A DNA stretch of 64,000 nucleotides, taken from the IMG/VR virus record IMGVR_UViG_3300044797_000098, positions 310,001 to 374,000 of that record; one strand, 5' to 3'. Within the stretch, counting starts at the first letter, position 1. Each line of letters opens with the position of its first letter. Shown here piece after piece: positions 3,098 through 62,376 of this stretch. The notes under the pieces are model-generated. The model saw nothing but the letters and a program-made list of their open reading frames with translations. It ran no database searches and was not told the DNA's origin. The translations under genes and the position numbers were made by a program.

Positions 3098-3433
3098 CTA
3101 CATCAGCAACTGATATTTATCCCATTCTTCTTGTGGTAAAAACACATACCCATCATTTTGTAATTCTTTATCAAGCAAGTTCTGTAAATCTACTAGTGAG
3201 TTAGAATAATCCCTGTGCCCGCCAAACACTGTTATACCTTCATTTGGCCAAACAACTCTTCCCTCATATGAAAATCCACTTAAATGCCCGTCAGGATTCG
3301 GCGATACCCAACACAATGTCGTTCTCATATTTTTATTTTTTCTATACCTAATATGATATCTTCGCCATCTTACAATTCCCCTGATTTCTTCGGGTGTCCA
3401 AGGCGACACTAATTTTGTTATATCCATAATCAC
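3098..3433 (-). CDS. Small protein, family A (LSPW/LTPY), C-terminal tag DKYQLLM
   Basis: Paralog of the next five ORFs: L.SPW...DKEL...GY.F. Confidence 0.75.
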   Translation of the reverse strand: MIMDITKLVSPWTPEEIRGIVRWRRYHIRYRKNKNMRTTLCWVSPNPDGHLSGFSYEGRVVWPNEGITVFGGHRDYSNSLVDLQNLLDKELQNDGYVFLPQEEWDKYQLLM

Positions 3434-3660
3434 ACCAGCAACCTATACTTATCAAACCCATCTTCCGAAGAACACAATTTATACCCGGCACTTATTAGTT
3501 CCCTATCTATACTACCCATAACAATCCAAAACTCATGATTGGAATTATGCCCCACAATATGTTCTGCTCGAATGATATTATTTAACGATATTCTGTAATA
3601 TCGCGTGTAATAGTCAAACTTTCGTGCTCGCCAAGGTGATAGTATATAACTTTCTTTCAT
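3430..3660 (-). CDS. Small protein, family A, C-terminal tag DKYRLLV
   Basis: ILSPW...DRELISAGY; ATGA coupling. Confidence 0.75.
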   Translation of the reverse strand: MKESYILSPWRARKFDYYTRYYRISLNNIIRAEHIVGHNSNHEFWIVMGSIDRELISAGYKLCSSEDGFDKYRLLV

Positions 3661-3971
3661 ATCAATAACGAATACTTATCCCATTGTTCCTGATCGCATA
3701 ATATATAACCAAGATCAGTTAGTTCTTTATCAATCAGATTCTGTCCCTCTTGTATAGAGGAAAAATCAATCATCCTATTATGAGATGAGCGTATTATATA
3801 ATGTATCGCACGACTAAATGATTTATCAAAACCGTAATAAGCCACCCACGCACCCCACAACTCTGGCTGTAAATCGTTTCCACCAACTCTCCATCTAACA
3901 AAAATATTTGCATCGATCTGTTGTTCATCAACAAAAACTGACCAAGGTGATAGTAATTTACTTTCTTTCAT
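3657..3971 (-). CDS. Small protein, family A, C-terminal tag DKYSLLI
   Basis: LLSPW...DKELTDLGY; ATGA coupling. Confidence 0.75.
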   Translation of the reverse strand: MKESKLLSPWSVFVDEQQIDANIFVRWRVGGNDLQPELWGAWVAYYGFDKSFSRAIHYIIRSSHNRMIDFSSIQEGQNLIDKELTDLGYILCDQEQWDKYSLLI

Positions 3972-4231
3972 ATCAACAACACCTGCTCTTCTGTCAAAAG
4001 AATATAATCATTATTGACTAACATTTTATCCATGCTCGTCATTGCGCTTTCCATTGTATTGAAAATCCTTCTATCGTGGTATTTTTGATTGAACTTATCA
4101 CCTATATAGGTATGAGACCACTCGTTAGAGACTAATTCATATACTAATCCAATACACACGTTATCCAACGAATATCTTGCATAACTATCATCTAATTTAT
4201 AATAGGGTGTTAGACATTTTCCTTTATTCAT
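3968..4231 (-). CDS. Small protein, family A, C-terminal tag EEQVLLI
   Basis: LTPY...DKMLVNNDYILLTEEQ. Confidence 0.75.
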   Translation of the reverse strand: MNKGKCLTPYYKLDDSYARYSLDNVCIGLVYELVSNEWSHTYIGDKFNQKYHDRRIFNTMESAMTSMDKMLVNNDYILLTEEQVLLI

Positions 4232-4476
4232 TAGATTAATAACATTTGTTCTTCTGTCAAAAGAATATAACCTTTATTCACAAGCAATGTATCCATACTT
4301 GTAATCGCGCCTTCTTTTGTGTCAAAATATCTTTGCTTCTCAGTATAAAATGAATGCGTCCATTCTTTACCTATTGTTTGATACACTACACAAACAAAAC
4401 TATAATTTTCTAAATTGCGTCTGCGATGATATCCATCTATCGAACTATATGGCGTGAGGTATCTGGATTTGTCCAT
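4231..4476 (-). CDS. Small protein, family A, C-terminal tag EEQMLLI
   Basis: YLTPY...DTLLVNKGYILLTEEQ. Confidence 0.75.
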   Translation of the reverse strand: MDKSRYLTPYSSIDGYHRRRNLENYSFVCVVYQTIGKEWTHSFYTEKQRYFDTKEGAITSMDTLLVNKGYILLTEEQMLLI

Positions 4477-4477
4477 T

Positions 4478-4777
4478 TTATATTAACAATGCTTGTTCTT
4501 CTGTCAGAATGACATAACCAAGTTTAATTAGATTCTTATCTAAATCTACCATTGCTTCTCGTAATGAATAATATTGTTTATGTCTACAAGGTGTTATAAA
4601 CCAGTATTTTCCTATGTCAAACTTTGTCGAATATAATATATGCCCATCATATATTGGATCTAATTCTTTTCCTGATAAAAACCTACGAATATATCTATGC
4701 GTATCGAGCTTTTTATCAAGTGAAAATTGAACTTTTTCATATGGCAACAAGTATTTAGAACGACTCATCTGTTTCAA
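4478..4777 (-). CDS. Small protein, family A, C-terminal tag EEQALLI
   Basis: YLLPY...DKNLIKLGYVILTEEQ. Confidence 0.75.
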   Translation of the reverse strand: MKQMSRSKYLLPYEKVQFSLDKKLDTHRYIRRFLSGKELDPIYDGHILYSTKFDIGKYWFITPCRHKQYYSLREAMVDLDKNLIKLGYVILTEEQALLI

Positions 4778-10520: not shown

Positions 10521-10528
10521 TTATTTAC

Positions 10529-10903
10529 TCATACTAATAGCAGATACTTTTCTATTTCATCCGCATACTTTGCGTATTTTTCTGGATTTCCTGTTTGACA
10601 CTCAAAACTTGCATATTTAATGTTATAGTCAGTATAATTAAAATTATTAATTAGGTAATCCACATACCATTTTAATACTCTGATTATATTTTTAGCAACT
10701 GGAAGATTACGTTTTTCATACGTATCAAAACATGAATACCATATCCCTATCCCATATTCTATGCCTTCTTCTGTAAAATCATCATCAACAATTTTATATT
10801 TCCATCTATTAATATGATTTTCAGGATCCTCACCGAGGTTCTCAATATATTCATAACGAATGAACATAACTATACCAAGTGGGAAAATGTCGGCGAACTC
10901 CAT
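10529..10903 (-). CDS. Small protein, family B (DDDF), tag EKYLLLV
   Basis: IVDDDFTE...IW....YEKRNLPVAKN. Confidence 0.75.
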   Translation of the reverse strand: MEFADIFPLGIVMFIRYEYIENLGEDPENHINRWKYKIVDDDFTEEGIEYGIGIWYSCFDTYEKRNLPVAKNIIRVLKWYVDYLINNFNYTDYNIKYASFECQTGNPEKYAKYADEIEKYLLLV

Positions 10904-11617: not shown

Positions 11618-11914
11618 TCATAGCAATACCATGTTCTTAACAATCTTATCTAAATACTCACGTAAGTCTTGTGGAACGAATACACTGATCATACCTTGCT
11701 CATCTCGTTCCTTATTTTCCCAATAAATTATACCTGCAATAGGATCATAGTATGGTGCTATTGCATATACTCTGTCATCACCTGAACCATCATCACGACA
11801 TCTGATTGGATCGCCTTTTATGATTTCAAGGTAAAATCTATTATCTTCCAACCAAGAATATCTTCTGTTGAAGTCTGCTTTGTATGTGCGACCATTGGAA
11901 GACTTAAAAATCAT
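11618..11914 (-). CDS. Small hypothetical protein, tag KNMVLL
   Basis: Tiling ORF. Confidence 0.65.
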   Translation of the reverse strand: MIFKSSNGRTYKADFNRRYSWLEDNRFYLEIIKGDPIRCRDDGSGDDRVYAIAPYYDPIAGIIYWENKERDEQGMISVFVPQDLREYLDKIVKNMVLL

Positions 11915-15176: not shown

Positions 15177-15440
15177 TCACATCAACAATAAATATTTTGC
15201 AATATCTTCTCTATATGGATCTAATTTTTGGGTCCTCGGTAATCCGTGTCTTTGAAAATAAAAATGTTTATATGCCAATACGAAGTTAGCCGCAACATCT
15301 AATCCACGAGATTTGTATAATTCAATGAATTCATCTGTCCATGAATCCCAAAAATCATCTTTACATTTAATTAATTCCGTAAAATTAGTATCTACTATTT
15401 CATATGTATGCGATCCAATATAAATACTGTTTTTAAACAT
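15177..15440 (-). CDS. Small protein, family B, tag AKYLLLM
   Basis: IVDTNFTE..W....LYKSRGLDVAANF. Confidence 0.75.
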   Translation of the reverse strand: MFKNSIYIGSHTYEIVDTNFTELIKCKDDFWDSWTDEFIELYKSRGLDVAANFVLAYKHFYFQRHGLPRTQKLDPYREDIAKYLLLM

Positions 15441-15446
15441 ATGATC

Positions 15447-15746
15447 TCATACCAATATTAAATACTTTTCAATATCATCTTTATATTTAAATAAATCTTC
15501 ACTATCAAGTAATTGTCGCAATTGCGAAAGATTAAGTTCTTTCATCCATCCTGATTTTTTCAATGCAAAAAATACATTTTTAACAACACTATCTGGCGTA
15601 TGTGTTTCATATGCATGAACAATCCCACCCCATACCATTTCACTTGTAAGGTCTTCTGCTCTCCTACAATTTTTTACAATACACATAGTAAAATCACTAT
15701 CTACCATAAATAAATCTCCATTGTTTTCAACTGTATGACTAAACAT
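15447..15746 (-). CDS. Small protein, family B, tag EKYLILV
   Basis: VDSDFT...VW...KYKDDIEKY. Confidence 0.7.
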   Translation of the reverse strand: MFSHTVENNGDLFMVDSDFTMCIVKNCRRAEDLTSEMVWGGIVHAYETHTPDSVVKNVFFALKKSGWMKELNLSQLRQLLDSEDLFKYKDDIEKYLILV

Positions 15747-16437: not shown

Positions 16438-16746
16438 TCACATCAATAGTAATATATTTTCAATTTGTTGTTTTGCTTTTTCTAAATCGAAACTAATCCA
16501 TTTGTTCAGTTCAACTTCGTGTCGTTTCTTATTTGGATTAAATATAACAATACGACATTTATTATTATGACTAAACCAAGTGGTAGGATATTTAAAATGC
16601 AGGCTGGAAAGATTATCGTAATAATAAAAACTATTACTACGCTTAACTAGATCTAACCCACAATCACAACCATACCATTCGTAAGATTGTTCTTTCTCAT
16701 TTTTCTCTGACCACTCAATATTACATCGTGGGCAGTGAGTTTCCAT
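16438..16746 (-). CDS. Small Zn-ribbon protein, family C, tag ENILLLM
   Basis: CPRC...CDC. Confidence 0.7.
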   Translation of the reverse strand: METHCPRCNIEWSEKNEKEQSYEWYGCDCGLDLVKRSNSFYYYDNLSSLHFKYPTTWFSHNNKCRIVIFNPNKKRHEVELNKWISFDLEKAKQQIENILLLM

Positions 16747-17488: not shown

Positions 17489-17791
17489 TTAAATTATATG
17501 TCGAATATTTTTCGCGATGCCAGAAAATCTGCTTGGCTCCCCCAATATATATCCTGCTTGTTTTTGATCAACTGCAAAATAATCATTTGAGTTTCCAACG
17601 GTGCAGACTAAAAAATCGGAATAAAACGCTTCCCATATAATCTTTTCAATTTGAACAACCGAAAGATCAATGGATAGTTTATCGAATATCTTTTTCGCAG
17701 CACGATCATATTGATTATGGTCTGCTCCTGCTTTTATGAAACCGAGGACATCGGCGTCTTCGAGCAATTCTTGTATGATTTGTAATGACAT
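17489..17791 (-). CDS. Hypothetical protein
   Basis: Tiling ORF. Confidence 0.6.
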   Translation of the reverse strand: MSLQIIQELLEDADVLGFIKAGADHNQYDRAAKKIFDKLSIDLSVVQIEKIIWEAFYSDFLVCTVGNSNDYFAVDQKQAGYILGEPSRFSGIAKNIRHII

Positions 17792-18019
17792 TAGATTAGC
17801 ACCATTAGTTTGTCAAGTTTTTCAATTAGATGAGGTCTCGTTGTTTTGATTGAATAATATAGAGGTTCAATTGCATCTCTGTCTTTTAGAGCAATTTGCA
17901 CAAAATCTTTTATTACTTCTTCATCACTATCTTTTGATCGGCTTCCAATTTTTAAAAACCTATCTAAAAGACAAAAATTAATATAATCGACTTGACAAGC
18001 CTTACGATTTCCGTAGCAA

Positions 18020-19397
18020 GAAAGCCCCAATGATTTATCTTGGGGATGAATTGCGTTATTAGAAATATTTTCGTAGTAATGTCGATTTTCTTAAAAAACT
18101 ATACATAATCTGATATATACTATAAGATGTATAATAAAACATATTCCATTCGCCTCTTTCCAACCGCTGATCAACAAAATCAACTAATGGAACTTATTGC
18201 TATTCGCAATGACATTTGGAATACACTAATCGATGTAGCAAACGCGTTTTATACTGATACAAAGAAAACGCTAAATAATTATGCAATGCATAAAGAAATA
18301 ACAATTCTAAAACAAACAATAGAAAAACAACACTGGTCAAAACTAAACGCAAAAGCAGCACAACGAGTGGCAACAGGGTTATTCGCTTCATATCAACAAT
18401 TTTTCAACAATATCAAAAAGAATAAACCAGCATCGCTTCCGAATAAACTTGAACCAACAGTCAAAAAATCAATCATATTCAATCAGTCAGGTTGGAATAT
18501 TTTGAAACAAAATAATTCAATCGATGGCAACATAATCGTAATAAATAAAATACCGTTTCAATATAAATCACATATCAAAAATCTCGATGAACTGAATGTC
18601 AAAGAATTAAAAATAAAATACAGAAACGATAAGTGGTTATGTGATTTATGCGTTGAATATAACGAAACCTATCCAGAAACTATCGAACCTAAACGAGTAT
18701 TAGCCATTGATCTCGGATTGAAAAATCTTGGAACAGGTATCGACAGTAATGGCACCATTGTAATAATTCCAAACAAAGCAAAGAAAGTATCCAAACACTT
18801 TGGAGAACAAATAGCAAAAATAGATACAAAAATATCAAAAAAGAAAAAAGGTAGCAGACGATATAAAAAATTGAGAGCAATACGAAGAAAATTATTCAAT
18901 AAAAAGAACGCACAGGTAAAACAAACTCTACATATTCAGAGTAAAAGAATTGTGAATATGAACTATCATACGATAGTAATTGGTGATCTATCCGTAAAAG
19001 AACTAATGAACAAGCAGAACAATAATAAAAAAGGTGTAAGAAAATCTTTCGGTCAATCGAATGTCAGTATGTTTCTAACATATCTATCATATAAAAGCAT
19101 TGGCAAAACCAATATCATAAAAATAGATGAGCGACATACGACGCAACTAAACTCGCTAACAGGTAAGAAGTTTCCAGAAAAAATTGAATTAAAAGATCGA
19201 ACAGTAAAACTAACGGATAGTATTGAGATCGATCGTGATCTCAACTCGGCTATAAATATCTATAACAGATGGTATAGCAACCAAATTGTGCCACTGACAG
19301 CGCCACTGGATTTATTCAGTGTGCTTGAAAAGAGTAATCTTTTCAAGAAAACTTGAAACATAAGAACCCCCGAACATTTATGTCGGGGAGTATGTCA
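18020..19397 (+). mobile_element. Non-autonomous IS200/IS605/IS607-type element carrying tnpB only
   Basis: Left hairpin CCCCAA..TTGGGG (18025-18045), right hairpin CCCCGA..TCGGGG-AGTATGTCA; no TnpA; junctions ambiguous by a shared GA. Confidence 0.88.
18127..19356 (+). CDS. tnpB: RNA-guided endonuclease TnpB
   Basis: HTH start IRLFPT..Q; RuvC LAIDLGLK, VIGDL, IDERHTTQ, IDRDLNSAINI. Confidence 0.92.
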   Translation: MYNKTYSIRLFPTADQQNQLMELIAIRNDIWNTLIDVANAFYTDTKKTLNNYAMHKEITILKQTIEKQHWSKLNAKAAQRVATGLFASYQQFFNNIKKNKPASLPNKLEPTVKKSIIFNQSGWNILKQNNSIDGNIIVINKIPFQYKSHIKNLDELNVKELKIKYRNDKWLCDLCVEYNETYPETIEPKRVLAIDLGLKNLGTGIDSNGTIVIIPNKAKKVSKHFGEQIAKIDTKISKKKKGSRRYKKLRAIRRKLFNKKNAQVKQTLHIQSKRIVNMNYHTIVIGDLSVKELMNKQNNNKKGVRKSFGQSNVSMFLTYLSYKSIGKTNIIKIDERHTTQLNSLTGKKFPEKIELKDRTVKLTDSIEIDRDLNSAINIYNRWYSNQIVPLTAPLDLFSVLEKSNLFKKT

Positions 19398-19425: not shown

Positions 19426-19701
19426 TCATATCAATACCATCAACTTATCTATTTTTTCAATTAGGTGAGGGCGGTCAATTTTAATTGCATTGTATAAAAA
19501 ATATAATAACTCACTATGAATACCAAGTGATTTTAGTTCATCAAAATAACATTTCATTATTTCCGCATCTCTAAAAGATTTAATATATTCTCTCTGACCT
19601 TTAAAATAACATCCTTCATATTCATCTGAACCATAATTTTCGCACGCGAGACATATATCTAATCCTGATTCAACGCAGTCTTCTATTGCTATAAAACTCA
19701 A
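19426..19701 (-). CDS. Small protein, family D, tag DKLMVLI
   Basis: Cys-rich start; RPHLIEKIDKLMVLI. Confidence 0.75.
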   Translation of the reverse strand: MSFIAIEDCVESGLDICLACENYGSDEYEGCYFKGQREYIKSFRDAEIMKCYFDELKSLGIHSELLYFLYNAIKIDRPHLIEKIDKLMVLI

Positions 19702-20045
19702 AACAACACCATCAATTTATCAAAACGCTTTATGAAAGTATCCTTATCAAAATTATCTAATGAATAGATTGTATTCTGTTTTGTTGTGTGTATGAAACGA
19801 TTTTCTTTTGTCATTGCGAAGAATGTATTCTCATCATCATAATTTACATCAACAACATATCCAATATCATTTACAACATTATACACCATAACTTCTTCCG
19901 AAAACAATGCTCCATTATCTTTTATGATGATTGAATAATTGTGATCTGCTGGAAGAATGAAAATATCATTTCCAGCGCAAGACATTAGATTTTTTGACAA
20001 TGCTGATAGTTCTTTATTACATACCTTGCAGGTATATGTTTTCAT
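19698..20045 (-). CDS. Small Zn-ribbon protein, family C, tag DKLMVLF
   Basis: CKVC...C. Confidence 0.7.
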   Translation of the reverse strand: MKTYTCKVCNKELSALSKNLMSCAGNDIFILPADHNYSIIIKDNGALFSEEVMVYNVVNDIGYVVDVNYDDENTFFAMTKENRFIHTTKQNTIYSLDNFDKDTFIKRFDKLMVLF

Positions 20046-20176
20046 ATAAGTAATAGATATTTTTCTAATTGTTCAGATGTAAATTGCGTCCTATGGATGA
20101 AGTTATATATTTCAATAAAATCATTCAGTGATGTTATGATGCTTGTTGCTTTATATGTTTCCAATAAATGTTTCAT
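20042..20176 (-). CDS. 44-aa protein (not in track), duplicate of the 3' half of the next gene, tag EKYLLLI
   Basis: MKHLLETY...FIEIYNFIHRTQFTSEQLEKYLLLI; ATGA-coupled on both sides. Confidence 0.65.
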   Translation of the reverse strand: MKHLLETYKATSIITSLNDFIEIYNFIHRTQFTSEQLEKYLLLI

Positions 20177-20397
20177 GTTAGTAATAGATATTTTTCCAAT
20201 TGTTCGACTGTAAAATGTGTATGACGAATAAAATTATATGTTTCAATAAATGTTTCTGTCTTAACGTATAAATGTTTTGATACAACATAAGTATCCACTA
20301 ATAATTTGATTTCGTGTTTTAGATTTGTCATATCGTTGTTTAGATCTACACCTAATTCACCAGCAATAAACGCTATATATAATGCCACAAAATACAT
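20173..20397 (-). CDS. Small protein, tag EKYLLLT
   Basis: FIETYNFIRHTHFTVEQLEKY. Confidence 0.7.
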   Translation of the reverse strand: MYFVALYIAFIAGELGVDLNNDMTNLKHEIKLLVDTYVVSKHLYVKTETFIETYNFIRHTHFTVEQLEKYLLLT

Positions 20398-23675: not shown

Positions 23676-23891
23676 TTACATCAACACAAGTAAATGTTCC
23701 ACTTCTTCAAGTTTTATATTATGCAATTGTCTTCCGGTTCTAACAAGTCTATGTGCTTCAATCCATAAATCACCATTGAAAATTTCAATCAATGTTTTTA
23801 TTGGGAATAGGTATTCTTCATTTAGTCTCGCCGTAGTCCATACAAGATCAACAAAATCTAAAAACTCTTTGATTTCTTCTGGCGTGCTCAT
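23676..23891 (-). CDS. Small protein, tag EHLLVLM
   Basis: Tiling ORF. Confidence 0.65.
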   Translation of the reverse strand: MSTPEEIKEFLDFVDLVWTTARLNEEYLFPIKTLIEIFNGDLWIEAHRLVRTGRQLHNIKLEEVEHLLVLM

Positions 23892-24222
23892 ATTAGCATC
23901 AAGTATTTCTGCACATCGTCTGCATATTTTTTATATTTTACACAACGATCTATATTGAATTTAATTAAATCATTCATATTATTCATATGAGTTTTACAAA
24001 AATATCTAAACGCTCTTACTAAATTGGCACCAACATTTAGATTTCGTTTTTCATATACCTCTATAACCGCTTCGCCAATACCACCGCTCCCGACCCAATG
24101 AAGTATAATGTTTTCCACAAAATCTGTATCAATTATCGTATAACGAATACATTTATTTACCTCGTAAATGGAACGATCTGTATCATTATATTTATGTAGA
24201 TCATCAGCACGAAAAAGAACAT
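23888..24222 (-). pseudogene. Family B gene with a frameshift in a T5 run just after the ATG
   Basis: ATG at 24222 is out of frame with RADD...IIDTDFVE...YEKRNLNVGAN...QKYLMLI; no in-frame start upstream of the DTDF motif. Confidence 0.6.
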
Positions 24223-25200: not shown

Positions 25201-25470
25201 TCACAACAACATCAACAATGCTTCTAATTGTTCTAATGTTATATCATAAGGAAACTTAATGTTTGTTGATATAAATCCTATATAATCTTCCCAGACTGTA
25301 CATCTATCATCAGCATACCAATATATAGTATATTTAGTGCCACCCAATCTTCTATGAATACATTCTGCGTTTTTGTTTATATAAATAAAATGAGTGATTT
25401 CGCAATTGACACAATACAGTCCGTTGTATTGCCAATCTTTATTGCATACTGGACAATTATGGAAAAACAT
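25201..25470 (-). CDS. Small Zn-ribbon protein, family C, tag EALLMLL
   Basis: CPVC...CVNC; start MFFHN. Confidence 0.7.
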   Translation of the reverse strand: MFFHNCPVCNKDWQYNGLYCVNCEITHFIYINKNAECIHRRLGGTKYTIYWYADDRCTVWEDYIGFISTNIKFPYDITLEQLEALLMLL

Positions 25471-25471
25471 T

Positions 25472-25756
25472 TTAGTATAATGCCCTATACTTCTCGCAAT
25501 AAAACATAGCCGTTTCATTAAGATTATTGGCTACACATATTCTATATTCTTTTTCCGATCCACCATATCGTCCAAGGATTATCATAATATCACATATTTT
25601 ACATTTTAAATCCATACGACATCGATATGAATCATTAAATGAATATTCGGTTTTATAATTGAGAACTAAACTGTGTCCATACTTCTGTAAAAATTCAATC
25701 GCTTCATTAGCGTCTTCTGTATATGGAATTGAAGCCCAAGTAATCATTTTGACCAA
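25472..25756 (-). CDS. Hypothetical Cys-containing protein
   Basis: CKIC; tiling. Confidence 0.6.
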   Translation of the reverse strand: MVKMITWASIPYTEDANEAIEFLQKYGHSLVLNYKTEYSFNDSYRCRMDLKCKICDIMIILGRYGGSEKEYRICVANNLNETAMFYCEKYRALY

Positions 25757-28348: not shown

Positions 28349-28645
28349 CTAAATTAGCATTAAATACTTTTCAATATCTTTTGCATACTTCTCATATAAT
28401 GGATTATATACTTTATTGTCTTCAATAATTTCTTCTATTGTAAGTTCATCATCGGGATAGGAACGTTCTTTTGCCCAATGTTTGAATGCTAATGCCATAT
28501 TAGCACCGACATTTAATCCTCTGTGTTCATATATACGAAACATTCCATACCATCCGCCAATCCCATTACCGGGATTTGGTATTCGACTATATTCTTCAAC
28601 AAAATCTGTATCTATAATACAACCATTATCCGTTTTTATGAACAT
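28349..28645 (-). CDS. Small protein, family B, tag EKYLMLI
   Basis: IIDTDFVE..YEHRGLNVGAN. Confidence 0.78.
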   Translation of the reverse strand: MFIKTDNGCIIDTDFVEEYSRIPNPGNGIGGWYGMFRIYEHRGLNVGANMALAFKHWAKERSYPDDELTIEEIIEDNKVYNPLYEKYAKDIEKYLMLI

Positions 28646-41908: not shown

Positions 41909-42130
41909 CTACATTAGCAATAGATATTTTTCTATGCCTTCTCTGTATTTGGAATACCAATCACATTGCCTTATATAATCTAATGGCTCGTGCCCATATT
42001 CTTTCCTAATGAAAACTATCAGTCTAACAACTTCGCGTGAAACATCTAATCTCTGTTCCTCACATAATTTAATTATTTCAGACCAAGTGTTGGTTTTACA
42101 TAACTGTTTGTAATCAAGCACAATATACAA
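41909..42130 (-). CDS. Small family B-like protein, tag EKYLLLM
   Basis: W....EEQRLDV; KYREGIEKY. Confidence 0.65.
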   Translation of the reverse strand: MYIVLDYKQLCKTNTWSEIIKLCEEQRLDVSREVVRLIVFIRKEYGHEPLDYIRQCDWYSKYREGIEKYLLLM

Positions 42131-45228: not shown

Positions 45229-45590
45229 TTGACCAATTCCTCTCTAATCATAACGCCCAATTCATAAGCAAAATCTTCCTGATCATATTCGGATTTTGGA
45301 TATCCGTCGAAACCTTTTTGGAATGAACGAACCCAATTTACATTTGTTTCCAAAATCTTTTCGATTGAATAACTTCTCCAATTGGTGAGGTGTGCTGGTA
45401 TAACATTTTGTTTTGCCAACATTACACACGCGAGCGCACAACAATTAGCATCCTTCTTTGGCACCCATTGTTCTTTGCCTTTGATTTTTTTGAGTTCGAT
45501 GCCCCAAGATTGAATGCCAAGTTTTACACCATTGGCCGTGATGGTTTTGATTGCATCACGAATAATCTGTTCTCGTTCTCCGTCATTCAT
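45225..45590 (-). CDS. Hypothetical protein
   Basis: Tiling ORF, ATGA coupling. Confidence 0.6.
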   Translation of the reverse strand: MNDGEREQIIRDAIKTITANGVKLGIQSWGIELKKIKGKEQWVPKKDANCCALACVMLAKQNVIPAHLTNWRSYSIEKILETNVNWVRSFQKGFDGYPKSEYDQEDFAYELGVMIREELVK

Positions 45591-45892
45591 AGTAATAGCA
45601 ACAATTTTTCTAATTGTTCCACTGTTTTAGCATCGAATAGTTTCGCCCCATACAATTCAGTTATACAGTGAATGTCGATTGCTAATCCGTTCTCCATTCT
45701 AACCCTGCTAACAATGGTTTTAAAACCTGTGTTTTCCAACTCCCATTCTATTCTATATGTCGCCCCAACTGTGCGGAATGCATACCCATTCCATTGACTA
45801 ATATCGCATTCGTGGCATTTAGAAAATGAACCACCAAAACCATTATCCCATATCAATGGCTGTTTGCAACATATACAATTTTTGTTTATCAT
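45587..45892 (-). CDS. Small Zn-ribbon protein, family C, tag EKLLLLL
   Basis: CICC...CHECDI...IEW...KLFD.KT.EQ. Confidence 0.78.
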   Translation of the reverse strand: MINKNCICCKQPLIWDNGFGGSFSKCHECDISQWNGYAFRTVGATYRIEWELENTGFKTIVSRVRMENGLAIDIHCITELYGAKLFDAKTVEQLEKLLLLL

Positions 45893-46152
45893 AGTAAAAT
45901 CAATAGTTTCTCAATTTGTTCCACTGTTCTAACATCGAATAATTTATACCCAACAAAAGACTTAATCGCTTTTGGTGAGCCACTGTGTCTTGAAAAAATA
46001 AATGTATGATTGTTTGACCACTCAATATCATATGAATATATTTGTCTGATCGAAAAAAGAGTGTAATGATAAATATCACATTGATTACAATACCTTACCA
46101 AGGCGAATGGATCCAGCGGTATATTACAAGCGATACAATTCATACGCCTCAT
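45889..46152 (-). CDS. Small Zn-ribbon protein, family C, tag EKLLILL
   Basis: CIAC...CNQCDI...IEW...KLFD. Confidence 0.78.
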   Translation of the reverse strand: MRRMNCIACNIPLDPFALVRYCNQCDIYHYTLFSIRQIYSYDIEWSNNHTFIFSRHSGSPKAIKSFVGYKLFDVRTVEQIEKLLILL

Positions 46153-46460
46153 ATCAAAATCAACAATTTTTCTAATTGTTCTTTCGTCTTTATATCGAAC
46201 AATTTCCAGCCATCGATTACTTTGATTTCATCTGGATACCATTGTTTTATGGATTCGAACCACTTATCCTTGAGTATGGCAGTTATTGGATCTGCACTAT
46301 ATTCATCCCTATTCCATTGGATCACATAATTCTCTATGTATCTTCCGCAATCATTACCATCATAATTCATATCACCAAAATATATTATATCACATTCATC
46401 ACATTTGTTTGTGGTTTGTGTTGCGTTTCGTGTTGGTTTCTTGCAAGATATACATCTCAT
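46149..46460 (-). CDS. Small Zn-ribbon protein, family C, tag EKLLILI
   Basis: CISC...CDECDI...IQW...KLFD. Confidence 0.78.
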   Translation of the reverse strand: MRCISCKKPTRNATQTTNKCDECDIIYFGDMNYDGNDCGRYIENYVIQWNRDEYSADPITAILKDKWFESIKQWYPDEIKVIDGWKLFDIKTKEQLEKLLILI

Positions 46461-47146
46461 ATTAATATAAACAATCTTTCAATCTCTTCTGGCGTTTTAG
46501 TCTTTGCCAATTTCAATATCATATCAATATGATTTATTGTTTTTACCCAAAACAATTTTAGACCATCGAATGATATAATCTCATCCCATATCTCTCTTGT
46601 GCTTTCCGGACTATCATTAATATCTTCCTGAATAACTGTTCGTATAGGTTCTCCATCGTGCCATAGCCAAGTTATTTGTAGATATTCTACTGATCGTTCT
46701 GCTTGCCCACCACCTTTTAGATAGGCAATATCGCAACTATAACACCAAGTATAACGATATTTTTCATTGAACTCAATTTTATTTCCACAACATATGCAAT
46801 CAAAACTCGTCATCGTCATCATCAATCCCACCACCAGTATTATCTTCCTTTGTTCATCTGTTAGTGATTGAAGGAGCCCCGGAGCATTTGCTATTTTCTC
46901 TACCATATCGTCATAATGCTTTTTGAACTCTGGATTTTTCATTTGTTCATCGAACCATTTAGCGAAGCCGGTTTCGTCTTCTTTATCTTCTTCCACTTCT
47001 TCGAGCAGTTCTCGCTGTTCATTCTTTTGACCACCGCGAGGTGCGTTCTTTGATTTCATTGGTGCCATTCCTGCCACACGCGAGCGCGCTGACATAACAT
47101 TGGAATTGCGAGGAACGGATTTGGTTTTCTTTTTATTTTTTGACAT
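46457..47146 (-). CDS. Composite protein: basic/acidic N-terminus fused to a family C Zn-ribbon, tag ERLFILI
   Basis: Family C module starts at MTSFDCICC. Confidence 0.65.
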   Translation of the reverse strand: MSKNKKKTKSVPRNSNVMSARSRVAGMAPMKSKNAPRGGQKNEQRELLEEVEEDKEDETGFAKWFDEQMKNPEFKKHYDDMVEKIANAPGLLQSLTDEQRKIILVVGLMMTMTSFDCICCGNKIEFNEKYRYTWCYSCDIAYLKGGGQAERSVEYLQITWLWHDGEPIRTVIQEDINDSPESTREIWDEIISFDGLKLFWVKTINHIDMILKLAKTKTPEEIERLFILI

Positions 47147-53106: not shown

Positions 53107-53400
53107 CTATTGCAAAACCAGTCGTTGATTATATCTTTCACAAGCTACCATTGCTTTTTCTTTTGTGGCAAACTTATGATCTGGTCGAAGACCATTGTTA
53201 TTTAGTAATGTTGTAGATACTGAACTTTTATTTAGCCAATGTATTTCGATATCGTCGATATGATTTTGACAAACCATAGTGCACCACCAACCGTTATTTT
53301 CTACACCTTGATACATCACACTGTAAGTATAGGATCCTTCGCGAGCAACAAAATAATGCAAATAACAATTATTCTCTTTTGCTATTGACCATTCTAACAT
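53107..53400 (-). CDS. Family E small protein
   Basis: MLEW...FATKEKAMVACERYNQRLVLQ. Confidence 0.8.
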   Translation of the reverse strand: MLEWSIAKENNCYLHYFVAREGSYTYSVMYQGVENNGWWCTMVCQNHIDDIEIHWLNKSSVSTTLLNNNGLRPDHKFATKEKAMVACERYNQRLVLQ

Positions 53401-53409
53401 ATCATCTCC

Positions 53410-53691
53410 TTATTGTAATATCAATAACTCATAATGTCTTTCACAAACGGCTTTTGCTTCTTCTGGCATCTTGAAAAAACAATCATCTGGCAAACTATCA
53501 ACCCTACTTGTAATACAATGCATATGAAGTCTGTTTGACACATATCCGCCCAAACTTTTTGGCGGAGTATAAACTATATACCACCCACTTTTACTATATT
53601 GTAAATACACAATGTCATACCATCCACGATCTGTATTTGATATGTATCGGTCATCACCACTCAATGCATCACTATCATTTTCCCATTCCAT
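53410..53691 (-). CDS. Family E small protein
   Basis: MEW...EEAKAVCERHYELLILQ. Confidence 0.8.
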   Translation of the reverse strand: MEWENDSDALSGDDRYISNTDRGWYDIVYLQYSKSGWYIVYTPPKSLGGYVSNRLHMHCITSRVDSLPDDCFFKMPEEAKAVCERHYELLILQ

Positions 53692-53699
53692 AATAAATC

Positions 53700-53987
53700 C
53701 TATTGAAGAATAAGCAGTCTATAATGTCTTTCACAAACTGCCATTGCTTCTTCTTTTGTAGCAAACTTATGTTCTTCTTGAATACCAGTGTTAGTATGTA
53801 AATCCGTTTTTATACTCTTTGTTATGTATAAACCGATCTTAGTGGAATTATAATCTGAAAAGAAAATAGAACACCAGCAATCTACACCTACGATATTTTT
53901 GCGAAACAAAATAACCTTATAAGATATATCACCTATATGTGATATATAATCATCTGGATGTCGAGTTCCCTGTTTTATCCAGTTCAT
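53700..53987 (-). CDS. Family E small protein
   Basis: MNW...FATKEEAMAVCERHYRLLILQ. Confidence 0.8.
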   Translation of the reverse strand: MNWIKQGTRHPDDYISHIGDISYKVILFRKNIVGVDCWCSIFFSDYNSTKIGLYITKSIKTDLHTNTGIQEEHKFATKEEAMAVCERHYRLLILQ

Positions 53988-54259
53988 TGTAAAATCAATA
54001 ACCTATAATGTCTTTCGGCGATTGCCATTGCTTCTTCTTTTGTCGCAAAAATAAGTCCAACTGAATTTGCTTGAATGGTATTTGTTCTTCTGGCTTTTAG
54101 ATTTTTAGATATAAATTTACCCATACTTCGAGGCGAATTAGTATGATATCTTATTACCCAGCCGTTATAGGTTCTTCCGTGAAATTCTACATCGTAGCAA
54201 TGAAAATTATCAACTGTTAGACACCAATGATCGAAGGTAGAAAACTGTTCCCAATTCAT
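53984..54259 (-). CDS. Family E small protein
   Basis: Start MNWEQ; FATKEEAMAIAERHYRLLILQ. Confidence 0.8.
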   Translation of the reverse strand: MNWEQFSTFDHWCLTVDNFHCYDVEFHGRTYNGWVIRYHTNSPRSMGKFISKNLKARRTNTIQANSVGLIFATKEEAMAIAERHYRLLILQ

Positions 54260-54522
54260 TGTAAAATCAATAATTTGTGATGGCGTTCGCATATCTCTTG
54301 CGCTTCTTCTTTCGTGGCGAACTCACAATTAGATTGTAGTCCTTGTGCTTCTGCTATTCCATAACCGCATTCTATGTTAAGATTATTAGATAGGAAGCCA
54401 CCAAGCATATCTGGTGGATTATATGATGAACACCACTTGCCATAATAACTGATCACACAATAATCATTTCCATCATCAAGATGAGCTTCCCAATAACCTA
54501 TATCAGTTTCTAACCAATTCAT
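54256..54522 (-). CDS. Family E small protein
   Basis: MNW...FATKEEAQEICERHHKLLILQ. Confidence 0.8.
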   Translation of the reverse strand: MNWLETDIGYWEAHLDDGNDYCVISYYGKWCSSYNPPDMLGGFLSNNLNIECGYGIAEAQGLQSNCEFATKEEAQEICERHHKLLILQ

Positions 54523-54532
54523 TTTATAAACC

Positions 54533-54796
54533 TTATTGTAAAATCAATAATTTGTAATGTCTTTCAGCAGCGCTGATTGCTTCTTCTTTCGTATGAAACT
54601 TATGTTCATCCAAAAAATGACCATAATTTGTGCTCAATGGCTTTGAGTTTTTGTCAAGCCAGTTTATTGGTAATCCGTTTCCATCTGAATATAAAACGCT
54701 CCAAGTCATATTTGATTGTAAGTAAATTACATTATATCTGTAATCACTTCCTATTGCAAGAAACTCTTTGCTTTCTATTTGTTTCCATTCTAACAT
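54533..54796 (-). CDS. Family E small protein
   Basis: MLEW...FHTKEEAISAAERHYKLLILQ. Confidence 0.8.
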   Translation of the reverse strand: MLEWKQIESKEFLAIGSDYRYNVIYLQSNMTWSVLYSDGNGLPINWLDKNSKPLSTNYGHFLDEHKFHTKEEAISAAERHYKLLILQ

Positions 54797-55047
54797 AGGA
54801 TTAGTAATTTGTGATATCGCTCACAAACCTCCATTGCTTCTTCTTTTGTTTTGAATTGACATTCTGGTAAGTTTGTAATCATTCTTCTGTTTTCTTCCAT
54901 TATATGTAAGTTTTTAGGTATCCATGCTCCACTTGGTTCTCTTCGTAAGGCTCCCCAACAACCTACAATATATGAAGCACTATATCTATGTAAGCCATCT
55001 ATATTAGCAGTTATAGTATAGGGTGATATAATCTTCCATTCCAACAT
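54790..55047 (-). CDS. Family E small protein
   Basis: MLEW...FKTKEEAMEVCERYHKLLILC. Confidence 0.8.
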   Translation of the reverse strand: MLEWKIISPYTITANIDGLHRYSASYIVGCWGALRREPSGAWIPKNLHIMEENRRMITNLPECQFKTKEEAMEVCERYHKLLILC

Positions 55048-55054
55048 ATGAATC

Positions 55055-55336
55055 CTACTGCAAAATCAGTAATCTATAATGTCGTTCTACAACTATTATC
55101 GCTTCTTCTTTTGTAGCAAAAAGATGCTTCGATGATATCAAGCCATCATTATAATCCAAGTCTATCGCCAATGAGTTTTTAGTTAACCATAATGATTTAT
55201 TGAACCTATTTCCATCTGTAATATTTACACACCAACAATTCTCTTGTTTTGAAAATCCTACTAAATACCTTATATTACCTGCTTGCGCAATAATTTCGCC
55301 ATATTTATTTGTTTCTATATTTCTCCATTTTAACAT
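55055..55336 (-). CDS. Family E small protein
   Basis: MLKW...FATKEEAIIVVERHYRLLILQ. Confidence 0.8.
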   Translation of the reverse strand: MLKWRNIETNKYGEIIAQAGNIRYLVGFSKQENCWCVNITDGNRFNKSLWLTKNSLAIDLDYNDGLISSKHLFATKEEAIIVVERHYRLLILQ

Positions 55337-55345
55337 ATTATGAAC

Positions 55346-55612
55346 CTATTGCAACAATAATAATTTGTAATGTCGCTCACAAACCTTCATGGCTTCTTCT
55401 TTTGTGGGAAACTTGCAATTATCTTTCAATTTATCGCCGTAATAAGATTCTATGCGAAGATTGCTTGATAGATAGCCAGCATACCTATTTAGATTTGGAG
55501 TATAATTAGCAACCCAGATATTATTTTTATCTTTCTCAAAAACTCTATAATTATGATCGATATCTGTGAATGGATGAGCGTAAAAATATGTAGGCTTGGA
55601 TTTCCATTCCAT
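55346..55612 (-). CDS. Family E small protein
   Basis: MEW...FPTKEEAMKVCERHYKLLLLQ. Confidence 0.8.
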   Translation of the reverse strand: MEWKSKPTYFYAHPFTDIDHNYRVFEKDKNNIWVANYTPNLNRYAGYLSSNLRIESYYGDKLKDNCKFPTKEEAMKVCERHYKLLLLQ

Positions 55613-55623
55613 GTGTTAGAATC

Positions 55624-55893
55624 CTATTGCAACAATAATAATTTGTAATGTCTCTCGCATATTGCGAACGCTTCTTCTTTTGTAGAAAATCGGCAATTTG
55701 TCGGCACACCATATCCATAATAACTTTCTAATTTCAACTTATTTGATAAGTATCTTCTTATTTTATTGTTCTCGGAATATTCTGAACTCCAAGGTATATT
55801 ATTGCCGGATGCGTAAGATACCCGATAAAATCTGTTATCGATATATGCTATGAATATTTCGTCCCCATTGCCATATGGATCAAACTTCAACAT
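55624..55893 (-). CDS. Family E small protein
   Basis: MLKF...FSTKEEAFAICERHYKLLLLQ. Confidence 0.8.
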   Translation of the reverse strand: MLKFDPYGNGDEIFIAYIDNRFYRVSYASGNNIPWSSEYSENNKIRRYLSNKLKLESYYGYGVPTNCRFSTKEEAFAICERHYKLLLLQ

Positions 55894-55967: not shown

Positions 55968-55996
55968 AATATAAGGATGGGTGGGGCGGTTGTCAA
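55968..55996 (-). promoter_or_regulatory. Sigma70-type promoter heading the family E array
   Basis: TTGACA-17 bp-TATATT. Confidence 0.75.
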
Positions 55997-59930: not shown

Positions 59931-60952
59931 GGTATAGCGTTCAATCTTTCAACAACTTCAATTAATACCTCTTTTTCCACCGCAAGATTTATCCTAACCT
60001 TACTCGCATCACCAAAACCTTCTCCATCTGCCACATTGATTTTAGCGTGTTGCAACTTTTGATATTCTTTCCCTTTTCTAAACCAACCAAACATCCCCGG
60101 AATATCAACAATATCTTCCGGCACATCAAGAATATCTTTACGAATAGATTTGATGATTGTCTTGTTTTCAATCAATCCTTCTTGGCATCGTTGAATGAAT
60201 ATATCGTATGTCTCTTTTTGTTCAAGATCGGTTAGCAATTCGAGAACAATACTTTGACTAACTGTCGATACACCGACTGTCATCATTTCCATATATTCTT
60301 GGATATCGTGGTGGAATTGTTCATTACTACAAACCGTATAACCAATCCTTAAACCTGACAAACCTAAAAACTTACTCATTGAATAAATCTGAACATCACC
60401 CAATGCAGGGAAGTCCTTATATGTCGGAAGATAGATTGGGTTGTAATACACCGCGTCATGTATGAATGGAACATTGTTGTCCTTGTGCCATTCAACAAGC
60501 GTTTTTATTCGTTCGGGACAATCGAACATATTACCACACGGATTACCCGGAAGCACTGCAAGATATGCATCATAAGATCGATCCACTGTTTCAAGACCGT
60601 GTGCTTTTAGCAACGGAGGAATTAATGGCCAAACTGGTCTCGTCAATGCTACTCGTTTTTTATTCATTTTATTGAGCGCATATGCCACTGCCCCAAGTGC
60701 ATTCTTCGCCCCATTTGTAATTACGACTGGTGCCTGATGCTTATCTTCCAAAAACTTTACAAGCGGTGGATATCCTGTTGGTGGCTGATATTCACATTTG
60801 TTATTTGAGTATAAATCAACGCTCAACTGATTTTGAGATCGATATAGGTCGAGCGTTGTTAGCAATGCATTACGAACAATATGAGCCTCGCCCACTGACA
60901 AGTCAATAAAACCCTCACCTAATTTTGGAATTGCAAGTAATAAATTACTCAT
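59927..60952 (-). CDS. PLP-dependent aminotransferase class I/II
   Basis: PGNPCG, IHDAVY, SMSK.LGLSGLRIGY, G..FG....VRI. Confidence 0.9.
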   Translation of the reverse strand: MSNLLLAIPKLGEGFIDLSVGEAHIVRNALLTTLDLYRSQNQLSVDLYSNNKCEYQPPTGYPPLVKFLEDKHQAPVVITNGAKNALGAVAYALNKMNKKRVALTRPVWPLIPPLLKAHGLETVDRSYDAYLAVLPGNPCGNMFDCPERIKTLVEWHKDNNVPFIHDAVYYNPIYLPTYKDFPALGDVQIYSMSKFLGLSGLRIGYTVCSNEQFHHDIQEYMEMMTVGVSTVSQSIVLELLTDLEQKETYDIFIQRCQEGLIENKTIIKSIRKDILDVPEDIVDIPGMFGWFRKGKEYQKLQHAKINVADGEGFGDASKVRINLAVEKEVLIEVVERLNAIP

Positions 60953-61233
60953 ATTAGCACCAAGTATTTTTCCATTTCTTTATCATACTTACCGTTCGTG
61001 CATCTACTAACGACACCATATAAATGATGTATTTGTTTTCTATCAATGCCATTGGTCATTCCTCGAACTAAATTACGAGCAACATCCAATCCCTTTTCCT
61101 CATATATTAAAACCGTTGCTTCCCAATAATTACTTGCCATTATGGTCTCGGTAAAATCATCATCAACGATTGTAATATAATATGTCTTATTTGATCCAAG
61201 TGGAGTGTATTTCCAATCATATGATTTTAACAT
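60949..61233 (-). CDS. Small protein, family B, tag EKYLVLI
   Basis: IVDDDFTE..YWEA..YEEKGLDVARNL. Confidence 0.8.
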   Translation of the reverse strand: MLKSYDWKYTPLGSNKTYYITIVDDDFTETIMASNYWEATVLIYEEKGLDVARNLVRGMTNGIDRKQIHHLYGVVSRCTNGKYDKEMEKYLVLI

Positions 61234-61535
61234 AACAACATATACTTTTCTATTTCTTTGTCGTATTTCCCGTTTGATTTTGCCATCATAAAATCATAGT
61301 ATTCCGTTTTAGACCATGCTTTGTTACAGAGTTCCATAACAATCTTATATGTCAATACCAAGTTCTTTGCAACATTCAAGTTTCGTTTTTCATATTCTTG
61401 TATTACCGCTTCCCAATAACTATTAGCGCGAACCAAGGCACAAAAATCAGTATCAGTTATTTCAAAACTGAACCTATACTTATCTGGCATAGGAGGGATT
61501 TCACGATCGTCGAGTAATCTAATTGATTTTAGCAT
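61227..61535 (-). CDS. Small protein, family B, tag EKYMLLC
   Basis: ITDTDF..YWEA..EYEKRNLNVAKNL. Confidence 0.8.
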   Translation of the reverse strand: MLKSIRLLDDREIPPMPDKYRFSFEITDTDFCALVRANSYWEAVIQEYEKRNLNVAKNLVLTYKIVMELCNKAWSKTEYYDFMMAKSNGKYDKEIEKYMLLC

Positions 61536-61825
61536 TATAGCAACATCAAGTATTTTTCGATTTCTTCATCATATATACCGCCAGTAAATTGACTGGCAAG
61601 TTTCCTGTTGTCATTAGACGAACCTTTACTGATCCATTTAATGGCACGCGCTAGATTAGCAGCAATGTTCAGGTTTCTTTTTCCATATTCTAAAACTAAC
61701 GCTTCCCACAAATTATTGGCAATCGTTGTCTCGGTAAAATCAGTATCAATAATAGTAATCATGATTGTCTTACCACCATTTACATATCTATTAGGATTAT
61801 AGTCCCAAGTTATAGATTTGAACAT
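61535..61825 (-). CDS. Small protein, family B, tag EKYLMLL
   Basis: IIDTDFTE..LWEA..EYGKRNLNIAANL. Confidence 0.8.
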   Translation of the reverse strand: MFKSITWDYNPNRYVNGGKTIMITIIDTDFTETTIANNLWEALVLEYGKRNLNIAANLARAIKWISKGSSNDNRKLASQFTGGIYDEEIEKYLMLL

Positions 61826-62112
61826 TATAGCAACATCATATATTTTTGGAGTTCGTCTTTGTATGGTTCAACGCTTGGTATATTATGAATAATATGATTA
61901 TATAAATCCGCAGTAGTTATATTGGGATTACTCCAATTAATAATGGCGCGTGCTAAGTTTTTGGCAACATTAAGATTTCGTTTTTTATACTCTATAACTA
62001 TCGTATCCCATACTGTGTGGGAGTCCGATTTTACTTCGAAGTCATCATCAGTAATAATCCATTCTTTCAAACCAGTGGATGTATTTTCTCTTAGGCTGCA
62101 TTTGATATACAT
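61825..62112 (-). CDS. Small protein, family B, tag QKYMMLL
   Basis: ITDDDFE..VWD..EYKKRNLNVAKNL. Confidence 0.8.
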   Translation of the reverse strand: MYIKCSLRENTSTGLKEWIITDDDFEVKSDSHTVWDTIVIEYKKRNLNVAKNLARAIINWSNPNITTADLYNHIIHNIPSVEPYKDELQKYMMLL

Positions 62113-62115
62113 CTG

Positions 62116-62376
62116 TTATACCAGCATCAAGTATTTATCAACTTCACTTGCATACTTTGCAAACTTTTTTTGGGTTTTATAATTATTCCATGTTTCTAAT
62201 ATCAAGCGGGGCTTCGCCCCGCTGGATCGGGCTCAGTCAATAGTCCTAACGGAAGCAATTCCAATGTATCGTCAACGGCAACGTTGGCAGATACAAGCCC
62301 TTGCCTTTAGGCAAGGGTAGTTGACCTCAATTGGAGATGTATTAGTTTTGATGATTGGTTCAGCGCGGAGGAACAT
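62116..62376 (-). pseudogene. Tagged small gene whose middle is replaced by a mini IS-like element
   Basis: 5' MFLRAEPIIKTNTSPIE (62376-62326); 3' LILETW...KYASEVDKYLMLV-stop (62205-62116). Confidence 0.65.
62206..62325. mobile_element. ~120-bp non-coding IS200/IS605-type remnant (omegaRNA/PATE-like)
   Basis: CAAGCCCTTGCC-TTTA-GGCAAGGGTAGTTGAC end; GCGGGGC-TTC-GCCCCGC hairpin at the other end. Confidence 0.7.

Follow-up and report, generated by a model that had tools for sequence, protein, structure and literature searches.

Introduction

Short terminal peptides that address otherwise different proteins to one destination have been described in several phage and cellular systems. In phage T4, the internal proteins IPI, IPII, IPIII and Alt are a diverse, fast-evolving set of small proteins, encoded in variable loci, that share only a short terminal peptide, the capsid targeting sequence (CTS) (PMC3012670). 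The CTS is N-terminal. It is cleaved off by the prohead protease. The scaffolding protein of phage 80alpha and CpmB of SaPI1 both carry at the extreme C-terminus an 11-residue amphipathic helix followed by a hydrophobic end, or hook, which docks into a hydrophobic cleft of an HK97-fold capsid protein (PMC5644958). Encapsulin cargo-loading peptides and microcompartment encapsulation peptides direct unrelated cargo to the inside of a protein shell, and encapsulin shells also have the HK97 fold (PMC7355545). Encapsulin peptides are extended, Gly/Ser-rich and follow a flexible linker. In the ssrA-type C-degrons and the C-terminal ClpX-binding peptide of SspB, a free, non-polar C-terminus preceded by polar or acidic residues is read by AAA+ machines. 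A more remote analogy, of logic only, is provided by the poxvirus ankyrin/PRANC (F-box-like) families, in which large sets of viral paralogues combine variable target-binding bodies with a constant C-terminal adaptor element that plugs into one host machine, although that is a eukaryotic system with a folded domain of about 40 residues.

Here, we analyzed a stretch of 64 kb (referred to as the window) from a 406-kb contig of an uncultured phage (IMGVR_UViG_3300044797_000098), in which about half of the small genes, from many unrelated families, end at the stop codon in a similar short predicted helix. An earlier sequence-only reading had reported this tail on small proteins of dissimilar families and proposed that it is a common docking, sorting or degradation signal that delivers small effector proteins to one partner. 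Huge phages carry hundreds of small genes of unknown function, and here about half of the small genes in 64 kb can be grouped by one short peptide.

Results

Occurrence of the tail. The reported observation was confirmed, as all ten examples that had been given were found at their positions with the residues and codons described. We counted 42 intact tagged ORFs, all on the minus strand, and two truncated remnants (Table 1), which end in the motif [ED]-x-[IL]-[ED]-K-[YL]-[LM]-x-L-[IVLM/Q] or in variants of it. A family-weighted PSSM of the last 10 residues gave a bimodal distribution, with 41 termini scoring 10.9 or more and the next best scoring -3.8, while only 1 of 19,163 internal windows exceeded 10. 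A six-frame scan anchored to stop codons gave 45 hits on the coding strand and 0 on the other. Random tails drawn from the amino acid composition of these genes, or from AT-rich codons, passed with P of about 1e-4, which predicts 0.01 tagged genes among 123. No recognisable enzyme carries the tag, also as had been stated.

Two qualifications should be considered when referring to these counts. In leave-one-family-out scoring, families B, C, D, F, 23676 and 25201 (singletons are named by their first position) clearly share one motif (12-25 bits), family A is weaker (7-11 bits), and 37208, 11618 and 16438 are marginal (4-7 bits), whereas the E tail (ERHYKLLILQ) and the A' tail (TEEQxLLI) are variants that are not recovered by the PSSM built from the other families. 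In addition, many copies are paralogues and the independent evidence is, therefore, the number of body families (about 10 or more) rather than the 42 genes.

Table 1 Tagged genes, remnants and the associated promoter match in the window.
Positions	Strand	Feature	Tail	Observation
3098..3971	-	Family A array, three genes (3098-3433, 3430-3660, 3657-3971)	DKYQLLM, DKYRLLV, DKYSLLI	
3968..4777	-	Family A' array, three genes (3968-4231, 4231-4476, 4478-4777)	TEEQ-x-LLI	Shortened tail, counted as a variant
10529..10903	-	Family B gene	EIEKYLLLV	Lies between a peptidase S51 gene and an R2K ATP-grasp gene
11618..11914	-	Singleton	KIVKNMVLL	Weak tag (4.3 bits in leave-one-out); an orthologue in the sister contig keeps it
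15177..15746	-	Two family B genes (15177-15440, 15447-15746)	IAKYLLLM, IEKYLILV	
16438..16746	-	Zn-ribbon singleton	IENILLLM	
17791..18030	-	Family D gene	LDKLMVLI	Separated from its paralogue at 19426 by a plus-strand TnpB gene
19426..20397	-	Four tagged genes in a row: D (19426-19701), Zn-ribbon (19698-20045), two F (20042-20176, 20173-20397)		The F gene at 20042-20176 encodes only 44 aa
22785..23395	-	Two family B genes (22785-23057, 23063-23395)	LERYLILV, VEKYLMLV	
23676..24118	-	71-aa singleton (23676-23891) and short family B gene (23888-24118)	VEHLLVLM, VQKYLMLI	
25201..25518	-	Zn-ribbon singleton	LEALLMLL	
28349..28645	-	Family B gene used for the structure model	IEKYLMLI	Tail forms the end of predicted helix 84-97
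37208..37582	-	HRDDGPA-repeat family gene	LAKYLTLV	All four homologues keep the tail
41909..42130	-	Short family B gene	IEKYLLLM	
45587..47146	-	Family C (predicted Zn-ribbon) array, four genes (45587-45892, 45889-46152, 46149-46460, 46457-47146)	EQLEKLLLLL and similar	The last gene, at 229 aa, is the only tagged protein over 135 aa
52833..52994	-	Truncated E-type remnant, open frame of 53 codons, not called as an ORF	ERHNELLILQ-stop	
53107..55893	-	Family E tandem array of ten genes	ERHYKLLILQ and close variants	Q-ending subtype
55968..55996	-	Sigma-70-like promoter match, TTGACA-17-TATATT (11 of 12)		In the gap just upstream of the E array; consensus match only, total count in the region not above shuffles
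60949..62112	-	Family B array, four genes (60949-61233, 61227-61535, 61535-61825, 61825-62112)		
62116..62232	-	B-type remnant, open frame of 38 codons	VDKYLMLV-stop	

Level of selection. To determine whether the constraint acts on the peptide or on the nucleic acid, we compared tails and bodies within families. The tail is the most conserved part of every family, with 65% identity as compared to 28% for the bodies, while synonymous-codon identity shows no excess in the tail (52% as compared to 56%). The constraint thus acts on the peptide, and a conserved DNA or RNA element at gene ends was rejected. The Leu at -2 is encoded by TTG, TTA, CTA, CTG and CTT, and no purine-rich SD-like codons are found at the consensus tail positions. 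Although 18 of 42 tagged genes overlap the next start by 1 or 4 nt, and the last codon often ends in A before TGA, 15 untagged genes with the same overlaps have ordinary ends and 24 tagged genes lack such overlaps. The tail ends at the exact terminus in 113 of 120 B homologues and in 41 of 46 E homologues, that is, in more than 150 diverged homologues.

Bodies and predicted folds. The bodies are not homologous by BLAST, by profile-profile comparison and by two different predicted folds. Profiles of families A, B, C and E (apart from B-E and E-A) align only over the last 9-13 residues, and with tails removed the probability is 0.3% or less, except for E-A at 16%, which is a weak hint of relatedness. 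AlphaFold predicts an alpha-rich fold for family B (three short strands plus four helices; mean pLDDT 86.4, with the last two 10-residue blocks averaging 97) and an all-beta Zn-ribbon fold for family C (six strands plus one helix; pLDDT 90), in which the tag, at residues 77-86, is the only helix (mean pLDDT about 91 over the last 10-residue blocks). One homologous fold was rejected for B against C. Two conditions that the sequence-only reading had set for its own refutation, namely that the tail follows from AT-rich codons or translational coupling, or that all families are one fold, were examined and did not hold. No flexible linker precedes the helix. No tag-less homologue of any tagged body was found and, as such, portability of the tail is inferred only from the non-homology of the bodies.

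Distribution and consensus. The tag is specific to a clade of huge phages of up to 470 kb, in which we counted at least 126 tagged proteins in 31 body clusters. It is absent from a control huge phage, and tblastn of B and E against GenBank phages found no relative. To examine mimicry of a host protein terminus, we scanned cellular genomes GTDB-wide with the pattern, which gave only singletons; the one recurrent hit, a 137-aa ORF in Chitinophagaceae, is an antisense ORF inside a 945-aa gene, and this reading was rejected. Searches of the tagged bodies against Pfam, PHROGs, PADLOC and PDB sequences gave no match, and Foldseek against PDB and BFVD gave no hit with E below 0.1. Across the 31 body clusters, Leu at -2 is present in 100% and Lys at -6 in 72%, while -3 is free to vary. 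On a helical wheel, positions -12, -8, -5, -4 and -1 form one face, with -2 and -6 on its flank. The tag is nearly confined to small proteins (44-237 aa, median 100 aa), as in the window it is found on 41 of 84 small genes but on 1 of 34 large ones (p = 4e-7). Tagged genes form large tandem arrays, including more than 20 B copies in 20 kb of the sequence L038, a pattern typical of conflict genes.

Comparison with described systems. As in the T4 internal proteins, a short terminal peptide is the only similarity shared by otherwise unrelated small proteins, yet the T4 peptide is N-terminal, whereas the present one is C-terminal, predicted helical, anchored to the stop codon, and shows no cleavage site. 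With regard to the 80alpha SP/CpmB tail, a predicted helix and a hydrophobic end are present here and the RIIK-type basic hook is absent; the end is instead L-x-L-hydrophobic, preceded by Glu-Lys, and is found on dozens of families rather than on two proteins. In contrast to the encapsulin peptides, the tag is a confidently predicted helix with no Gly or Ser among the commonest residues at the tail positions and with no linker, and no shell genes are seen nearby. As compared to ssrA-type degrons, residue sizes and register differ, the last residues being L, I, V, M or Q rather than the exposed small residues of LAA, the tag is predicted to be structured, and it is encoded in each gene rather than added. 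The bacterial sliding-clamp binding motif (QL[SD]LF or QLxLxL) does not match, as Gln is only one of several residues at -9 and Lys occupies the position that should be Leu.

Discussion

The interpretation offered by the sequence-only reading is partly supported. Selection on the peptide, dissimilar bodies, anchoring to the exact C-terminus and absence from enzymes all hold, while the proposed signal, the effector nature of the proteins and the single partner go beyond the data. In our reading, the tail is a portable C-terminal module of 10-15 residues, an N-capped amphipathic helix ending at the free carboxylate, that has been placed on many unrelated, fast-diversifying small proteins of one clade of huge phages and is kept there by selection on the peptide. 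We tentatively propose that it serves as a common docking element, such that each variable body carries the same helix, which would fit a groove on one shared partner. What the analysis establishes is the motif, its terminal position, the peptide-level constraint, the non-homologous bodies and the restriction to one clade and to small proteins; that the tail docks at all, to what, that the proteins are packaged or act as effectors, and that one partner exists, are inferred. No partner was identified.

The leading concrete model, although doubtful when taken on its own, is docking to the inner face of the HK97-type capsid or its scaffold. In this view, a library of dozens of small, probably counter-defence, proteins would be loaded onto the thousands of identical docking sites inside a huge phage capsid and co-injected with the DNA, as with the T4 internal proteins and the 80alpha SP/CpmB tail. 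Such an encapsulin-like or T4-CTS-like system would work on a scale and with a signal not seen before. However, sigma-70-like promoter matches ahead of the E, C and D/F operons, together with the neighbouring replication and nucleotide-metabolism genes, suggest early expression, which fits capsid loading poorly, and no structural genes lie in the window. The next models to consider are tethering to an AAA+ unfoldase or protease, or recognition by a modifying enzyme. For the latter, the free carboxylate held by the helix may be the substrate of a phage C-terminal modifying enzyme, such as the neighbouring R2K ATP-grasp, although a link to this gene and to the peptidase S51 gene rests on a single adjacency that is not seen in the distant relatives and is, therefore, kept only as a lead.

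If the peptide is an address or docking element, identification of its partner would assign a common pathway to dozens of orphan families at once, and the tail would also provide a portable 10-15-residue handle for loading or tethering proteins. If the helix proves to be only structural, it is still an unusual case of one helix reused on different folds.

Of the alternatives, the one that survives best, although we consider it unlikely, is that the tail is a purely structural cap, namely an especially good amphipathic closing helix that covers a hydrophobic surface of very small domains, that spread between gene families by recombination within the arrays, and that is kept because each small fold needs it, with no common partner. 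The very high confidence with which AlphaFold places the helix in both monomers argues against a free tag and fits a structural element at least as well, and an ordinary amphipathic pattern with a variable -3 position and the restriction to small proteins, which need every stabilizing element, point in the same direction. Nonetheless, this does not explain why polar positions (Lys -6, Glu/Asp -7 and -10) and Leu -2 are the same on an alpha-rich and an all-beta body, why the chain must stop right after the last hydrophobic residue in so many homologues, or why 43 other small genes here do without it, and synonymous sites show no recent DNA transfer.

Self-association, with the helices packing into homo- or hetero-oligomers (small bundles) among the tagged proteins, is less likely still. 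The broad hydrophobic face with a conserved flank, the presence of tagged proteins of only 44-53 aa that are unlikely to fold alone, and the co-expression of many tagged genes from the same arrays are in its favor. Yet oligomerization helices do not normally need to end at the exact C-terminus, and promiscuous hetero-association of 40 or more different proteins would be hard to control.

A C-degron that marks early proteins for timed removal by a host or phage ATP-dependent protease is similarly unlikely. A free non-polar C-terminus is reported to be destabilizing in E. coli (Parsell, Silber and Sauer 1990), as with ssrA/ClpXP and FtsH, expression looks early, and a shared signal on many proteins causes no stoichiometry problem. 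However, the tail is bulky and predicted to be helical and packed, the conserved Lys -6, Tyr -5 and acidic positions are not needed for described C-degrons, and no protease gene is linked in the loci available for comparison. Finally, an artefact of AT-rich codons, translational coupling or a DNA/RNA element at gene junctions is refuted by the chance expectation, the untagged overlapping genes and the synonymous sites described above.

Genomic context

The window corresponds to bases ~310,004-374,003 of IMGVR_UViG_3300044797_000098, a 406,470-bp viral contig, is 34% G+C and carries almost all of its genes, tightly packed, on the minus strand. The recognisable genes fit a huge phage and include a UvrD-type helicase with an intein, NAD-dependent ligase, GluRS, PTH2, a FEN-type exonuclease, dCMP deaminase, DUF444, an R2K ATP-grasp, peptidase S51, TnpB, and GIY-YIG and LAGLIDADG endonucleases. 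No near relative was found among GenBank phages, and the nearest hits for DUF444 were uncultured phages of 595-642 kb at 25-30% identity.

A shared C-terminal tail

A sequence-only reading of this DNA had proposed that about 44 small proteins from unrelated families share a C-terminal tag, and this observation holds, as all of the examples it named are present and we found 42 intact tagged ORFs and two remnants. A weighted PSSM of the last ten residues separates the termini cleanly, with 41 scoring 10.9 or more and the next scoring -3.8, while only one of 19,163 internal windows exceeds 10. A six-frame stop-anchored scan gave 45 hits on the coding strand and none on the other. Random tails pass with P of about 1e-4, so that 0.01 tagged genes are expected. 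Counted back from the stop, the consensus is [ED](-10), x, [IL](-8), [ED](-7), K(-6), [YL](-5), [LM](-4), x(-3), L(-2), [IVLM or Q](-1), with Leu -2 being invariant in the window.

The constraint is on the peptide. Leu -2 is encoded by TTG, TTA, CTA, CTG and CTT, and within families the tail is 65% identical while the bodies are 28% identical. Identical residues share the same codon in 52% of tail positions and in 56% of body positions. Moreover, fifteen untagged genes with ATGA or TAATG overlaps have ordinary ends, and 24 tagged genes lack such overlaps.

It should be noted, however, that not all tails are equal. Leave-one-family-out scoring shows that families B, C, D and F and the genes at 23676 and 25201 share one motif (12-25 bits), whereas family A is weaker, the genes at 37208, 11618 and 16438 are marginal, and the tails of families E and A' are variants. 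The Q-ending variant recurs on a second, unrelated family elsewhere on the contig (…RFFKLLLLQ in the loci L005 and L028) and is, therefore, a real subtype. Two further ORFs (63266-63490 and 25472-25756) may carry decayed or extended tags. One ends …NMILLLKDK, a tag-like stretch followed by three extra residues, while the other ends …CEKYRALY, its orthologue in the sister contig ending …CEKYRVLV.

The tagged bodies

The bodies are unrelated. With the tails removed, BLAST leaves 13-26 groups. Profile-profile comparison aligns four of the six family pairs (B-A, B-C, E-C and A-C) only over the last 9-13 residues and, without tails, probabilities are 0.3% or less, except for E-A at 16%. AlphaFold models family B (58-sequence alignment, pLDDT 86) as three short strands plus four helices, with the tag ending the last helix, while family C (pLDDT 90) is modelled as a Zn-ribbon with a beta-sheet whose only helix is the tag. 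No structural neighbour was found for either model, and no tagged body matches Pfam, PHROGs or PADLOC.

Distribution of the tag

A stop-anchored, back-translated pattern finds 29 sites in all of IMG/VR, of which sixteen lie in this contig and its sister contig (157 kb), and two or three more in two contigs from one other sample, the rest being chance hits not at ORF ends. Family B has 157 metagenomic homologues on contigs of up to 470 kb, and 113 of 120 of these end exactly in the tag. Family E has 46 homologues, 41 of them exact. A 470-kb relative carries the tag on a B gene, three Zn-ribbon genes (at least two types) and four tandem 70-aa genes, while a 196-kb contig (JGI 3300080028 Ga0669116_0000239, here L038) has more than 20 tandem, head-to-tail B copies in 20 kb, interrupted by a DUF2201 (vWA/metallopeptidase-like) gene. 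Some of these copies show an internal duplication of the tail (…QKYLQKYMVLL). In about 270 kb of clade sequence, there are 126 distinct tagged proteins in 31 body clusters. Controls were negative, as 41 kb of an unrelated 595-kb phage contain no tag, and a scan of 185,579 cellular genomes, with at least 120 matching loci, gave only scattered singletons among 120 of these, the single recurrent hit being an antisense ORF.

The carriers are small proteins, with a median of 100 aa, a 5th-95th percentile range of 71-127 aa and a maximum of 237 aa. In the window, 41 of 84 small genes are tagged, as compared to 1 of 34 larger ones. The charge and pI of the tagged proteins do not differ from those of untagged small proteins. 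Sigma-70-like promoters precede the E array (11 of 12 match) and the operons holding the C and D/F arrays. This hints at early expression, although the overall promoter count is not above that of shuffles. ATA is the commonest last codon of the tag (9 of 32 non-E tails) and is read by a tRNA-Ile with anticodon TAT that is encoded in the window.

Interpretation

What the analysis shows is a terminus-anchored tail, predicted to be helical, that is under strong peptide-level selection on non-homologous bodies, from which its portability follows only by inference, whereas any docking function and any common partner are likewise inferred. A common function for the helix is the simplest reason for identical polar and non-polar positions on different folds, and for the strict chain end. 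We thus tentatively favor a docking element for one shared partner, although we hold this reading with less than even confidence. The proposal of the sequence-only reading, namely that the tail is a common docking, sorting or degradation signal delivering a library of small effector proteins to one partner, is only partly supported. The best structural precedent is the tail of the 80alpha scaffold and CpmB, an amphipathic helix plus hydrophobic end that docks in the capsid protein (PMC5644958), while the best logical precedent is the T4 internal proteins, which are diverse and share only a targeting peptide (PMC3012670). Nonetheless, AlphaFold places the helix confidently in both monomer models, there is no linker, no partner is known and expression looks early, all of which argue against docking. 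Of the alternatives, a structural cap is unlikely but survives best, self-association is less likely still, and a C-degron is the least likely of the three. We found no description of this motif or of these families in the literature. The idea of a shared terminal address is known, whereas this signal, its carriers and its scale are not.

Neighboring genes

The positions of other features are listed in the table below. The adjacency of one tagged B gene to an R2K-clade ATP-grasp, a predicted protein peptide-ligase (PMC4431377), and to a peptidase S51, which flank it, might represent a C-terminal modification pair. This should be considered only as a lead, as the adjacency is not seen in the 20-kb stretches of distant relatives. 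DUF444 (YeaH-like, vWA) recurs next to tagged arrays in three diverged members of the clade, namely in the window and in the relatives L036 and L037, and in the window has a near-consensus sigma-70-type promoter (TTGACA-17-TATTAT).

The TnpB (IS605 OrfB) gene sits between two family D paralogues (17791 and 19426), on the opposite strand, and looks like an insertion into the array. TnpB genes also lie in or next to small-gene arrays in the relatives L036, L038 and L039. The homing-endonuclease genes all lie on the strand opposite to the main transcription direction, with ORF-free gaps nearby in which Rfam finds no intron or RNA. Directly downstream of a tagged B gene are five tandem paralogues, 28-31% identical to the first, that share an invariant block, FSS-x-G-x-EG-x-WDI-x-T-x-SMRGI-x-SCQ-x-W, and have no Pfam, PHROG or PDB-sequence match.

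Positions of additional features in the window and in related contigs
Sequence	Position	Strand	Feature
Window	1937-3031	-	DUF444
Window	3032-3097		Gap containing the near-consensus promoter of DUF444
L036	6044-7159		DUF444
L037	4775-5026		DUF444
Window	9765-11643	-	R2K-clade ATP-grasp and peptidase S51 flanking a tagged B gene
Window	12622-15162	-	UvrD/Dda-type helicase interrupted by an intein (Hint and intein-splicing domains, residues about 260-610)
Window	18127-19356	+	TnpB (IS605 OrfB)
Window	21588-22310, 39993-40949, 50736-51545	+	Two GIY-YIG/NUMOD3 and one LAGLIDADG homing-endonuclease genes
Window	39278-39992, 47548-48155		ORF-free gaps of 715 and 608 nt
Window	63266-63490, 25472-25756	-	Possible decayed or extended tags
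Window	28647-36464	-	Five tandem paralogues of 467-548 aa
Window	49048-50475, 27897-28301, 37586-38575	-	Translation-related genes: a full GluRS, a PTH2 peptidyl-tRNA hydrolase and a 329-aa protein with the DUF5915 domain
Window	62830-62903	-	tRNA-Ile, anticodon TAT
L038	116-17779		Family B array interrupted by DUF2201
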